A stretch of DNA of 64,000 nucleotides from Trichosphaerium sp. ATCC 40318 (GCA_038496445.1 JALMLS010000257.1:1-64000), one strand, 5' to 3'. Shown: positions 23,799-30,333, counted from the stretch's first letter. Notes: a model not told the origin generated them from the sequence alone. Program-made: numbers and translations.

Positions 23799-26082
23799 AT
23801 GAACAAAAAAAAAAGAAACCCTTGTATTTAGTATTAAACAATGTACAGTAAGCCTGATAGTGTATCTATCGCGGTAAAAAGTAAAATAAAAAACGTAGAT
23901 TTGTAAAAAAAAGAGTTTACGTTAGTTTTTCTCAAATTGACTCTACAAAATAAGAAATTACTTAATTTACGCGTGTAGTAATTAATTATTGTAGTTTCTG
24001 TCGATTTTGTCGCATTTTTTTCCTTCGGCCATTTTTACGAGTTGTTACTGTTTTTTTTTCAAACGAAAACGCGCAAATACGGCTCACAGTACGCTAAAAA
24101 CGTATTAGAGTCGGTTATTGTACAGGTAAAAAAGAAATCGCCAAAACAAAAAAAAAAGCATTTTTGCGTAAACGCTTTCGAGTTCCGGCAATGTAAAATA
24201 CGCTACGTACGTTCCTAACGCAAACAGAGGTAGTAGGGCTAACCGGAAATGAATTCTAACCTTCATAAAACAATAATTTACAAAAACGCCTTTAAACGCA
24301 CCGCGACGCAATAAAAAAAATACCTGCCCGATAAACTCGCCCTTCGGAGTAAAAATCTTTTGGAAAAGCAACCAAAACGAAGTGAAAATTTTTTTACGCT
24401 TTCTGACTCTTTTATTACGTGTTAACAAGTCTGCATATACGATATAATACGGTTATAAATAATTAAAATACGTACAGAGGCTAAATATCTTAAAAAGGAA
24501 AAAAAAACCACCCAAAAACTTCTTCGACGGCCTTGCGGATAAATTCACTTACCCGCTTCATTTTCTTTCAAAAAAAAAAAAAAGAAAAGTTACGTAAGTT
24601 TAGACAAAACGTTCGTTCTGTCGTAATCGAGCCACCAAAAAAAATCTCCTTTTATGTATACTATTCCTCACAACCTTATCTCCCTGTGACTAATAATAAC
24701 AGTTAAATAACGTAATAAGGATAATAAATATAGAGGTTTTTTCTAATGTCAATGACAAATTGTTTTCGAAGTTCTTTTTTTTTTTTCGCATTGAAACGCG
24801 TTTAAACGGTTTTAAAACAAACATTGGAAGTTTTTTTGTTGAAATGGTAGTGCGTTAATCCTTTTTATAGATTCAGATGCTTCGCTCTGTATCTTTTTTT
24901 GGTTTGTCACAATAACAATGTATTCACCACACTCATGAGAAGTAGGTCACATCCATTGTATTAATTTGGTTTTGTTGACAAAAAAATCAAGTTTTTTTCT
25001 AAAAGAGGTTTTTTTCCGCTGTGTGCGAAAATATCTTGCAACCTTCGGTTCTCTGGGCATAAGCAGTTCTAAAACTAAAATTTAAGAACTCTTTATGCGC
25101 TCAGGAACAAGTTCTAAATCATAAAAAAAATCGTGAAACTCGAGTTTTGTTTTCGCGCACTTTTTGTACGTTCTGGTCGTAAAACCCCAAATTGTGGGAA
25201 AACGCGCGTTCTTTTGTAGCATTGTGATGTGCAATGGGCTGAATGTAAATTTACCTAAATATAAATTCGTACGTACCATCTCAGTGGCCATTTTTACGCG
25301 CTCCGTTCAGGGTTTCCTCAAAGATACTGCTTTAGGACAGCGTGGTCCTTTTTTGCGTCTTGAGTTTTTTATAGCTTCTAAGGCCACCAACCGCTCTATA
25401 ACACCTCGCAATCGTTCAGCTGTTTGGTTTTATGCAACGACGAGGGTAGTTCGGAGCATTTGGATGTATCCTTTCTCTTTTTCTTCTCTGATAAAAGTTC
25501 AGAAAACTATTCTCACCTCCATTGCACCTAATAATTATTTTAACAAAGTCTATGAGTCATACATTCAAAAAAGGTTACCCACCACAGAACTGCAGACGGT
25601 AAAAATAACCCTTTTTGCAGACTTTGCGTACTATGCACAGGTGCTACATGTAGAGCATTTTTTATGAACCTAGTTAACTGGAATTAACAACCACAGCCAA
25701 TCTGTGTGAGCGTTCACGGAGTAGTACTTAGAACAAAGAACTCTGCCACGTATTATTCAAGAGAACTCGGTCAATAGGGCTGGTTCTTTGTCCGAATTAC
25801 CAACTGTTGACTGATGTGGACTTTGAACTTTTCGAAATATTTAGTTTGTTGCGTCTTAGTTCCGGTTTCCAAGTCTGCTTCCCAGACATATGCAACAGAA
25901 AAGACTACTAAGTATGTATGTACAACTAAACCTTACAGTACTACACCTTGAATTCACGTGTAAGCTCAACGGATATATTTTTGCCATAAACAGTTTATTT
26001 TTTGTTGAAGTTGCTTTCTTCTCTTTAACAATTACAGCAATCAATAGCATTCATAAACGTAATATACTTCTTCATCAAACGT

Positions 26083-26159
26083 AAACAAACAGTTATTGTA
26101 TATCAAGACACACCACGCTTGAAATTAAGTTTTACAGTGCATCCATCATAAGTTTGTTC
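26083..26159 (-). promoter_or_regulatory. SECIS element (type II) in the 3' UTR of the GPx fusion gene
   Basis: Minus strand reads AACAAAC-TT-ATGAT-GGATGCACTGT-AAAA-CTT(aatttc)AAG-C-GTGGTGTGTCT-TGAT...GTTTGTT. This gives helix I, the AUGA/UGA core, an 11-bp helix II (several G-U pairs), unpaired AAA and an apical mini-stem. Confidence 0.85.
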
Positions 26160-26438
26160 TCCGTTTTTTTTTTTGTTTTTGAAAACAAAAAAGTGAGAAA
26201 GAATGATTTTCTTCTTAACTTATCATCTAACCCTGCTGTTATTTGATAAGTTTCTTGCAGAATTCACAATGGTATATATTTAATAAATCTAGTGAAAGTG
26301 TAAGTAACGAAGAAAGAAAAGAAACGAAGAAGTAAACAAACAAAAAATTGGTTTGCATTTTAGAACTTTCATATTTATGGTCTATGTTGCTAACGTACGA
26401 TATTAAATATACTGTGAGTAGCAACAACAACATCTTGT

Positions 26439-28889
26439 CTATAGATTACTCTGCAATAAAATGTTAGAAAGAACGTATAAAGTCTAGAAAATGCAAAATA
26501 TCTTCGTTTGACAATACCTTCTTCTCAGAATCTTCAGAGTCTTCCTTGGCACTTTTGTTAGTGCTTGGAGGTACTGGCTCTTCCAATAATAATTTAATGG
26601 TCTTGACAAGCTTCAAAGGCTTCATAGGAGGACTGTAACGCTTTACTGGCTTTCCACTTCTATCAATAAGAAATTTTGCAAAGTTCCATCGAATGGTACT
26701 ACCCAGTGGTCCTGAAAGGTTCTTTTTAAGGTATCTATAAAGAGGATGGGTGTTTTTTCCATTCACATCAATCTACAAACAACCACGTGAGAAATAAATC
26801 AAACCAGAAAAAAATGACAAAATAAAAAGGCGTTTCTCTTTCACATGTGACGGCTAAATATTGTCCCGTATTACTATAAAAAGCATCTCGGAAGTAATAC
26901 GACAGCTCTGTGATAGTTTTTTTTTTGTAAAACTGGGAAGAATCTTTTTAAAACATACCTTGCTGAATAACTGAAAAGTAACATTCCATTTTGCACTAAC
27001 TTCTGCCTTGATTTCGGCTTCTGGTTTAGGTTCTTGTTTACCAAACTACAAGAAAAATTAGCCAGTCTCACCCCAAGCATAGAAAAACAACAGAGCTTAT
27101 ATATCACGTGACAGCATCATATTGGAAAAAAATTTACTTACTTGGTTGCAGGGAAACGCAAGAATCTCCAACCCACTTTCTCCGTATTCTTCATAAATAC
27201 TTTGAAATTGCGTATAGTGGGCTATGCAAGAGTCAAACAAGGAAAACAAGACAACAAAAGTTTTTACAACTTTGGTAAGGTCGGAAAATCCAACGAATAC
27301 ATACCTGGGGTTAGACCTCAGTAGGTCGCAACGTTCGTTATAATGCAAACTTTACCCTTTTAGGTTCATGAGTTTAAAACAATTATAAAATAAATGTACT
27401 TTGTATTTGCTTAACGAAACGTTGTTACCATCAATATCGAGTGCCTCGAAGTCATATATAGAGTCCGCTGACATTTGTGCGGATGTGGACTACAAAGAGT
27501 GAGCAAAAAGTTCTCAAGGGCAAAGAAGTGCGTACGTTTTCTTCAGCGAATTTGACGCCAACTTCTGCCAAGGCACTTAACCACTCTTCTTGTTCAGACG
27601 TGCTTGATGCGCAGATACTATGCTTTTTCCTTTTTTTACCTAATCACGTATTTTATATTAGTACAAACTCGAACACACGTGACCAAACGACATTAAACAA
27701 AATAAAATATAGTAAAAACCTGAAAATTTGAGACTAAACTAAAGCGCTTACCTTCTCTAACAGTCCAACAATATTCTCCTTTCTTACACTCACAATCAGC
27801 GCCAATCAAATCAGTGTTATTAAGATTGATAAGAGACTTAGGTGACGTAGACTAGACGCAAAAAACAGTAAGAACGTAGCAAAGTATTTCCGAAGAAAAA
27901 AAAAATGGGAGGAAAGGGAGAAAAAAAAATCCGATAGTTCTGCCCAAGAATTACTTCTAGCACTACCGCGACGCGAAAAAAGTTGATACAATCCGTTTGT
28001 AGTAAAAAAAAATGAGAAAGTAAAGTACCAGTTCAGACTCAAAGAAGTATAGATGCTTCTTTTGTTTATCCAATACAGCGTAACGCTCACTCCAGAATAG
28101 GATACCTTTTTTCTTTAGTTTACCTGCTCTTGAGATGACTTCGCCTAAATTTAATTAGAGAAGGGTTACAGTACAAAAAGTACTACGGAACGACATGCTA
28201 TGAAGTAGTAGAAACGTTATGGAAGGTAAAGAAGGCTCAAAACCGACAACAAGACAAGCTATTTAAATTTCCGTCCGAAGAGGCAGACAGCTTTTCAATG
28301 TTGTTATTTAAACGTACTTTTCTTAAGAGAAGCTACAGAGGGACCTCTCTTTGCGTCTGTATCATCCTCCTATAACTCAGGTAAGTTTTAGAGTTTTAAT
28401 GAGTAAATTAAAAAGTCAGAGAGCCTGGTTATCTTACGTTGAACCGATAAAATAGTTCCTCGTTCTTAAAATTATGAGCGTCTTTAACGTGGTGGAGCAA
28501 ATCAGCGTCCATCATCATTTGTCCTTTTGACGTTATTTTAGTAAACGAAAACCGCCTAAACAACGTACCTAGCGAAACTGCGAGGTTTGCATCCTCTGCA
28601 AAGCCGTGCGTGACCAACCAAGCTACACCTTCGGTTCCTGTTGTTTAAAATGTTATTTATTGCTTTGCAGTACTGTTGACGTGCCAATAAAACACTTTGG
28701 GTTCTTTTGAAGATGGTATCTTCTATCTTTAATGGAAACGCCATCAATAGGGTCGCGCATCTATCAACATGGTTATCGAGTGAACTAGACAATTATACTT
28801 ACTTTATCTACAATACTCTGAAAAAATGCCTCCGTCATCTCTTTGGTGGAGGTAAAATCGGCCTCATCAGAAGCCTGATCCTCTTCCAT
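26439..28889 (-). CDS. DEP domain + PH domain + selenocysteine glutathione peroxidase fusion, multi-exon
   Basis: DEP: GVSIKDRRYHLQKNPKCFIGTEGVAWL...LLHHVKDAHNFKNEELFYRF. PH: WSERYAVLDKQKKHLYFFESE...SASSTSEQEEWLSAL. GPx: SIYDFEALDIDG..., NVATY-TGA-GLT (TGA at 27320-27318), LAFPCNQFG, IRWNFAKFLIDRSG. Confidence 0.85.
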
Positions 28890-29143
28890 TGTTAACGGAA
28901 GGAAGACGTAATACAAATATACCGACGGTCGCTATTTCCCCAATTAAGTCAAGTGTGCCAAAATTGTTATCCATGACGTTTAATGACACTATTAGTATTT
29001 GTGATACACGGCAATCAGTGGTTGAGTCTTGCATGGCAAACGTTAAAAAAAAAAGACTCAAATAAAGCTAAGGCATCGAGCAATACCCTTAAAATGCTGT
29101 TGTATTGGTGTATTAGCGTGTGAGAATTGCTATGACTCATTAA

Positions 29144-30333
29144 CTCTTTACCTGTAACAAAAAAAAAAGTTACCTGTAACAAAATTGTCCCATACATATT
29201 TCTCAGCGCCCTCTTTTCAACTTTCTCTGATATGAACATAATCCGTCCCAATCATGGTTGTAAGTGTGAGGCGCACACCATAATGAATTTAGCATTTGCC
29301 AACAAAGCTGTCGAATCAATTAACTGATCCCAATTTTTCCATTTTTTTCGCTAAGTGTTTATAATTTTAGATTTATATTCCATCTTTTGACCACACACCA
29401 CTATGTTAAGCTTCTACGTGTTGTAGTGAATGACATGCAATAATAAAATCTATAAATGGAATGTTTTATAATGGTAATGGAGTTGGGTCACATTGCAAAA
29501 ATTACTTAGAAATTTTTTCTTGTTTTTTTCAAATTTGTCACATGTGGTATGCTGACTCTTGAATTTAAATTGTACTAAATTCTATTTCTAGATGGTATAT
29601 ATAGCTCATATACAAGCTTTAAAGTTGAATTTTGAATACGAATTAGCTACCAGCACGTCCAGAAAATGTATTTTTGTGATATTTGCATGTTTTTAAAACG
29701 CTGTTTTTGTGCTACAATTCAACACGTGTTCAAAATTTCAACTATGAACATTGACCACACACTGTATTGTTCGTTCTCAAAAAACTTTTTTGGAGTACAA
29801 AGTACAACATTGCTGCCAAAAACTGTGTTTTTTTGTTCGCTCCAAATTTTGTTTCCCAAAGTGTTTGGATAAAATTATCCAACGTACTACACTTTATCAA
29901 GTGTCTAGGTAGTGTGAAGATGTACTGGCCTCGGTATTAGTGGTAAGGGGTACAATTAAACAAATATATATCATTAAAACTCGATAAAGTTAACCAATGA
30001 CCATGACAAGGCTTGCTATTATCTTTCCAGCGCCTAAAATTCGTGTTATGTTACTTTTAGCGTAGTTTACGCTTGTGTTAGCTTATTTTAACGGTTTTTT
30101 GTAAACCTTGCTGTAAGCGGTATTATACGTTTATTAGGCGCTAAAAAATCAGATGCTGTGCGTATTTACGCTAGTGTTAAACAGTGTATCAGATTAGGGT
30201 TTATTCTGCTTATTTGCACTTTTGCGTGGCTACAATAGGTAATTAACATTGTTTTAAGGTCATTTTAGTGGTCAATAGTGAGTTTTGTTGAAACATGTTA
30301 CAGGTAATTTTTTTTTTTGTTACGGATAACGAG
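29144..30333 (-). mobile_element. Non-autonomous, decayed piggyBac-related element A (1190 bp), ATTAA direct repeats
   Basis: Left end CTCTTTACCTGTAAC-A10-GTTACCTGTAACA; right end TGTTACAGGTAA-T11-GTTACGGATAACGAG. ATTAA at 29139-29143 and 30334-30338. Patchy internal similarity to element B in inverted orientation. Confidence 0.85.

Follow-up and report, generated by a model that had tools for sequence, protein, structure and literature searches.

The stretch of Trichosphaerium sp. ATCC 40318 analysed here, 64,000 nucleotides (nt) in length (GCA_038496445.1 JALMLS010000257.1:1-64000, hereafter the window), harbors on its minus strand, at 28918-25983, a single gene of 15 exons and 14 introns, as defined by the exon layout and by comparison with a cDNA contig (L001). 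The surrounding region is eukaryotic, with about 35% G+C and short introns of 42-186 nt. Very probably this one gene encodes a selenoprotein with a predicted length of 421 residues, in which a DEP domain, a PH domain and a linker are followed by a glutathione peroxidase (GPx) of the GPx4 type. Its selenocysteine (Sec), Sec273, is predicted to be encoded by UGA and inserted via a selenocysteine insertion sequence (SECIS) in the 3' untranslated region (3'UTR). The gene is composed of the following features, each given with the evidence that defines it:

28803-28918, minus strand: exon 1, with the 5'UTR (28918-28890) and the first 29 codons from the ATG at 28889; L001 begins at 28918 and a genomic in-frame stop lies 14 codons upstream
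28438-28760, minus strand: exons 2-4 (28760-28685, 28637-28569, 28523-28438), encoding the DEP domain, residues 36-105 (Pfam, cDNA, fold)
28684-28638, minus strand: intron 2, GC-AG (cDNA)
28318-28369, minus strand: exon 5, encoding the linker between DEP and PH (spliced in cDNA)
27536-28144, minus strand: exons 6-8 (28144-28029, 27851-27752, 27639-27536), encoding the PH domain, residues ~125-222, with the Cys-rich hairpin DCECKKGEYC (Pfam, AlphaFold model, Foldseek)
27490-27535, minus strand: intron 8, a 46-nt GT-AG intron at the PH/GPx junction, removed in L001, with the stop-free frame ...AEEN/STSAQ... across it
26518-27489, minus strand: exons 9-13 (27489-27400, 27356-27305, 27221-27142, 27045-26959, 26772-26518), encoding the GPx4-type GPx (Pfam, PDB matches)
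27318-27320, minus strand: TGA, the predicted Sec codon 273 at the catalytic position (in frame in window and cDNA, aligned with homologues)
26399-26450, minus strand: exon 14, with the final three codons (Ser-Asn-Leu, SNL), the TAG at 26441-26439 and the start of the 3'UTR (cDNA)
26289-26398, minus strand: 3'UTR intron, 110 nt, GT-AG, between the stop and the SECIS-like element (absent from cDNA)
25983-26288, minus strand: exon 15, the remaining 3'UTR to the end of the contig (L001)
26083-26158, minus strand: SECIS-like element, with a lower helix, AUGA (26149-26146), helix II of 9-10 bp, AAAA, a mini-stem and UGAU (26105-26102) (fold and scanner)

Exons were laid out from the reading frame and the splice signals and were then aligned by coordinates to L001. 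For database searches the window exons were used singly, and longer queries were pieces of L001, with the two sides of the UGA taken apart. A word search with exon 13 led to a 127-residue product (P0001, 96% identity) that is carried by L001, a natural 1642-nt JGI transcript contig. The window exons were matched to this contig one by one, with all 14 introns (13 GT-AG and one GC-AG) removed and 1630 of 1643 aligned columns identical (99.2%). The 5'UTR, DEP, PH, GPx, the stop and the SECIS-like hairpin are all spanned by this one transcript. An earlier note on this DNA, made from the window sequence, had read DEP, PH and GPx as linked by spliced exons, and this holds: L001 is one mRNA with one reading frame that is broken only by the UGA, and it crosses all of the DEP-PH-GPx junctions rather than presenting DEP-PH and GPx as separate genes. 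The frame comprises 421 codons, from the ATG at 28889 to the TAG, and its sole interruption is the TGA at codon 273. This TGA occupies the GPx catalytic position at 27320-27318 that the earlier note had assigned to it, in the context NVATY-[TGA]-GLT, in the window as well as in the cDNA.

Comparison with L001 further settled details of splicing that the genomic sequence offers in more than one form. The donor of intron 2 is the GC at 28684, and a GT 12 nt downstream, which would also keep the frame, is unused in the cDNA. An apparent tail of exon 13 is excised by a 67-nt intron (intron 13), by which the C-terminus of the protein becomes ...EKK-SNL and the last coding exon contributes nothing except Ser-Asn-Leu and the stop; retention of intron 13 would yield an alternative 17-residue tail. 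The SNL tripeptide, which we take to be similar to a weak peroxisomal targeting signal (PTS1), is not conserved among relatives. In the 3'UTR, the junction left by the 110-nt intron lies 40 nt past the stop, upstream of the SECIS-like element. All 13 differences between L001 and the window fall within the last three exons (25983-26772), the first 1087 nt being identical, and this clustering suggests that L001 derives from another allele or from another strain, in which the 3' end has diverged.

The domains were assigned on the L001 product with Pfam, at cut-offs of 32.7 bits for DEP (PF00610), 25.1 bits for PH (PF00169) and 27 bits for GSHPx (PF00255). DEP was matched at 74.4 bits over residues 36-105 and PH at 39.5 bits over residues 131-221. 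The GSHPx profile was matched on both sides of the TGA, with 28.2 bits before it (residues 241-271, profile positions 1-31) and 96.5 bits after it (profile positions 34-108). Matches obtained with single window exons were collinear with the profiles: DEP positions 1-21 were found in exon 2 and 44-72 in exon 4, PH in exon 6, and GSHPx positions 1-20, 39-63 and 64-92 in exons 9, 11 and 12, respectively. An AlphaFold (AF2) model of the N-terminal piece, calculated from a 14-sequence alignment (mean predicted local distance difference test score 84.4), showed the fold of DEP and that of PH, the latter with seven strands and a helix at its C-terminus. Foldseek searches with the PH part of this model retrieved the PH domains of SKAP-Hom, dynamin, Grp1 and pleckstrin (TMt 0.6-0.8), and those with the DEP part retrieved DEPTOR, RGS7 and P-Rex1. 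The DEP domain is nearest to P-Rex1 DEP1 and DEPTOR (E 1e-23 to 1e-25). PH and GPx are separated by a short linker of ~14 residues, the length of which is conserved in relatives. A close DEP-PH paralogue was not found in this genome.

GPx enzymes carry Sec or Cys at their catalytic position. Here, the catalytic tetrad is formed by U273 (TGA), the Gln in FPCNQFGKQE, and the Trp and Asn in RWNFAKF, and the alignment revealed no resolving Cys in the GPx domain. Among PDB entries the GPx part matched GPx4, poplar GPx5 and Schistosoma GPx at E values of ~1e-34 to 1e-35, and GPx1-3 and GPx5/6 more weakly, at ~1e-15 to 1e-17. Judged by these sequence matches, the peroxidase domain is nearer to the monomeric GPx4-type enzymes than to the tetrameric GPx1-3 enzymes.

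The earlier note had also claimed a SECIS ~280-350 nt past the stop. A SECIS-like hairpin indeed lies there, with a core of ATGA (26149-26146) and TGAT (26105-26102), 290 nt past the stop by genomic distance and 180 nt past it in the mRNA. It is built of AUGA, a helix of 9-10 bp, an unpaired AAAA 12 nt after the AUGA, a short mini-stem and a flanking lower helix. Two differences of the L001 allele fall into this hairpin: an A to G change at 26142 keeps the pair as G-U, and an A to G change at 26126 lengthens the mini-stem. To locate such elements, a motif-plus-fold scanner was used that demanded AUGA followed by AA after 9-13 nt, a helix II of no fewer than 7 pairs and a closing GA, with dinucleotide shuffles as control. 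Exactly one site per UTR was obtained for the window, L001, L003, L007 and L032, and two overlapping sites were obtained for the L033 UTR, one of them with the 12-nt spacing between AUGA and AA. This spacing thus occurs in all six UTRs, which represent five independent lineages. In the shuffle control, any match was found in 22 of 300 sequences for the window UTR and in 1-7% across UTRs. In a further relative, L030, the element is visible by eye and was not called by the scanner; in the 130-nt 3'UTR fragment of L031 the scanner detected no SECIS.

The genome is also equipped for Sec, on which the earlier note had made its reading depend: tRNA-Sec, SepSecS and selD-like genes were all found. 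The tRNA-Sec was detected by Infernal at 61.7 bits, with the anticodon loop CUUCAAA and the anticodon UCA; ARAGORN gave no call for it. SepSecS is present as a multi-exon gene, and selD is represented by selD-like exons. In addition, five further GPx loci were identified (C7:494945; C82:249750-250038; C82:235594-235874; C49:60859-61217; C79:1741-2030). Three of these contain an active-site TGA together with one scanner match each, 650-750 nt downstream. On C49 the active-site codon is TGT (Cys); in the copy on C79 the active site was not located.

To place the gene among relatives, the N-terminal piece of L001 and then a profile built from it were used as queries, and representatives were collected by an exhaustive profile search. 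The products found are 249-292 residues long and contain DEP, PH and the start of GPx. In about 38 representative clusters (less than 50% mutual identity) a single match extends to the very C-terminus, and all of them end in ...VNVA(S/T/C)x, one residue short of the Sec codon. Where DNA was available, a TGA occupied the same position in all eight lineages (L001, L002, L003-6, L007/8, L030-L033) and was followed in each by the conserved sequence GLT...FPCNQFG...WNF(A/T)KFL. One of these lineages, L007/L008 from a marine metatranscriptome, has the architecture DEP-DEP-SecGPx with no PH, and its SECIS-like hairpin likewise bears AAAA 12 nt after the AUGA.

The family extends to the sponge Geodia barretti, whose locus L035 (GCA_030341885.1, CASHTH010002481.1, 5001-7450) contains the TGA followed by in-frame GPx exons. 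Two NCBI proteins of this species, CAI8030419.1 (276 residues, named 'DEP domain-containing mTOR-interacting protein', 'DEPTOR') and CAI8030417.1 (213 residues, named 'Phospholipid hydroperoxide glutathione peroxidase'), fall together into one of the clusters, and each stops where the Sec codon lies. The JGI and Logan calls in turn split L001 into a 281-residue product with DEP, PH and a weak GSHPx match and a 127-residue product with GSHPx, so that annotation is cut at the UGA just as the earlier note had anticipated. Because gene predictors stop at the Sec codon, the DEP-PH-GPx gene has been overlooked in many protists and in a sponge. Apart from the sponge, the family was not seen among animals in these searches. 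Cys instead of Sec was found in one member only, the 788-residue homologue of the choanoflagellate Salpingoeca urceolata (EukProt P0381), which is also the sole member whose predicted product runs past this site. It has other residues where the tetrad has Trp and Gln, and its C-terminus is extended by ~390 residues of low complexity. Retention of the architecture despite these two replacements suggests a function other than catalysis alone.

One environmental JGI product, P0348 (851 residues), carries TPR repeats and Mob1/phocein ahead of DEP-PH-GPx and may represent either a more extended fusion or neighbouring genes merged in the prediction.

Several observations weigh against the selenoprotein reading and the function drawn from it. 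The Rfam model SECIS_1 scores the window element at 17.2 bits in a 221-nt scan, compared with a gathering threshold of 35, and an Rfam scan of 24000-30000 returned no SECIS at E<=1. Rfam likewise found no SECIS in the UTRs of relatives; since the elements of the relatives were missed as well, we treat Rfam as insensitive here. The mini-stem of the window allele is only 3 bp long and is absent from the minimum-energy fold. L001 stems from a near-identical strain or allele that is not demonstrably the same isolate. Insertion of Sec is a prediction from sequence, and the cellular site and the substrate proposed below are candidates. Compared with the phosphoinositide motif K-Xn-(K/R)-X-R, the PH domains of the family mostly preserve Lys in K-G and Arg in x-R-Y/F, and the first basic residue after the Trp is missing (W-S-E-R here). 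As the motif is incomplete, no specific lipid binding is predicted.

As a rule, DEP and PH domains bring proteins to membranes or to partners bound there, and membrane lipid hydroperoxides are substrates of GPx4-type enzymes. In the proposed mechanism, DEP-PH would dock the enzyme on a membrane surface, either of the plasma membrane or of endosomes or phagosomes, where the GPx4-like monomeric domain would reduce phospholipid hydroperoxides or locally made H2O2 at the expense of a thiol. Given the docking habit of DEP and PH, the membrane lipid hydroperoxides that GPx4 uses as substrates and the short conserved linker, a membrane-held peroxidase is the simplest reading, and we lean modestly towards it as the function of the protein.

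The strongest of the competing explanations leaves the gene structure as it is and differs in function alone. In this explanation the protein would serve as a peroxide sensor or relay and not as a scavenger: GPx would be oxidised by H2O2 and the oxidation would be passed on to cysteines in its own PH domain or in a partner, switching membrane binding by DEP/PH or signalling. Candidate acceptors exist in the Cys-rich hairpin of the PH domain (window 27780-27810, minus strand), whose pattern C-x(1,2)-C-K/H-x-G-x-Y-C was found in 24 of 48 family representatives; it is, however, absent from half of the family, the sponge clade included. The short PH-GPx linker of conserved length, the proximity of the DEP domain to those of the signalling proteins P-Rex1 and DEPTOR, and the choanoflagellate homologue, which keeps the architecture despite its replaced Trp and Gln, would all fit a relay. 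On the other hand, the GPx domain lacks the resolving Cys that is typical of relay-type Cys-GPxs and resembles GPx4, and a partner is not known. We therefore regard a relay as unlikely, if worth keeping in mind. A narrower form of it, to which we give slightly less credence still, is a self-contained membrane redox switch, in which Sec would sense peroxide made at the membrane (an oxidase of the phagosome or of the plasma membrane being one conceivable source) and oxidise the Cys hairpin of its own PH domain, altering docking or partner binding. If true, a transducer from peroxide to signalling would be common to amoebae, choanoflagellates and sponges.

Two further alternatives concern the gene itself, and both are highly improbable. 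Two genes, one for DEP-PH and another for GPx that begins in exon 9, joined by nothing more than read-through or a polycistronic transcript, could be read from the ATG of Met236, which stands 5 codons into exon 9 just ahead of the GPx domain, but Met236 is not conserved in 13 relatives, the two parts are separated by no more than the 46-nt GT-AG intron that is spliced in frame in the cDNA, the stretch from PH to GPx is stop-free, and the ~38 divergent clusters hold DEP-PH and the N-terminus of GPx in one open reading frame. That the UGA is a true stop, so that a DEP-PH protein of 272 residues would end in a stub of GPx and the GPx sequence downstream would be a decaying remnant, would accord with every gene caller ending the product at the UGA and with Rfam not recognising the SECIS, but is contradicted by the post-TGA sequence, which is strongly conserved and keeps the catalytic Gln, Trp and Asn in the sponge as in each of the eight lineages for which DNA was available, by the 96.5 bits of this part against GSHPx, by the recurrence of SECIS-like hairpins in relatives, and by the Sec machinery and other Sec-GPx genes of the genome.

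Sec-GPx enzymes are regarded as small single-domain proteins. In the protein predicted here, a GPx4-like selenoenzyme would be permanently tethered to two docking domains of the signalling type. The organisms that share this architecture include, at a minimum, one amoeba, one sponge and one choanoflagellate (which has the Cys form), besides dozens of lineages known from environmental sequence, with Sec in nearly every case. Full-text literature searches, which included a paper on animal GPx families, returned no description of a DEP- or PH-linked GPx; the domain types and the recoding mechanism are known, and the architecture and its breadth are, as far as could be found, undescribed. Such breadth points to an old, dedicated placing of lipid-peroxide or H2O2 control at particular membranes, with a bearing on the origins of GPx4-type protection from lipid peroxidation and on redox signalling. 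It also holds a lesson for annotation, as every public gene call found was cut at the UGA and the sponge copy was named 'DEPTOR'.

When compared with known systems, the peroxidase part shares with GPx4, Schistosoma mansoni GPx and poplar GPx5 the thioredoxin-fold GSHPx domain, the tetrad, the lack of a tetramer-interface loop and the lack of a resolving Cys. Decoding of Sec through a 3'UTR SECIS, predicted here, would be common to this protein and the GPx4 type. Known GPx4-type enzymes are single-domain proteins of ~160-200 residues besides their targeting peptides, whereas here ~235 N-terminal residues with DEP and PH precede the enzyme. Pleckstrin (PH-DEP-PH) also combines DEP with PH, in a different order and number, and DEPTOR (DEP-DEP-PDZ) and P-Rex1 DEP1 have a similar DEP in proteins that differ in the order and number of their domains; none of the three contains a catalytic redox domain. 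Membership in the DEPTOR or pleckstrin families was considered and rejected, the architecture here being DEP-PH-GPx with neither a PDZ nor an N-terminal PH. In the Protein Atlas the nearest clusters were pleckstrin-like, with a score of only 0.79, which is below the meaningful level and serves as a lead only. Yeast Orp1/Gpx3, a GPx-fold protein of one domain, uses Cys at the active site, has a resolving Cys as well and hands on its own oxidation as a signal. It may be a functional analogue, with the differences that the present protein is predicted to use Sec, lacks the resolving Cys and has its candidate acceptor in the same chain.

DEP is joined to a thioredoxin-fold redox domain also in the plant glutaredoxin (Grx)-DEP-DUF547 proteins (an Atlas cluster of 60 members, Streptophyta). 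These contain Grx instead of GPx, have neither PH nor Sec and follow a different order, and the likeness is one of predicted structure only (TM 0.52 by query). Separately, DEP domains related to the one described here were seen fused to a pyridine-nucleotide disulfide oxidoreductase (PF07992) or to glutaredoxin in the environmental products P0201, P0210, P0211, P0223, P0225 and P0220.

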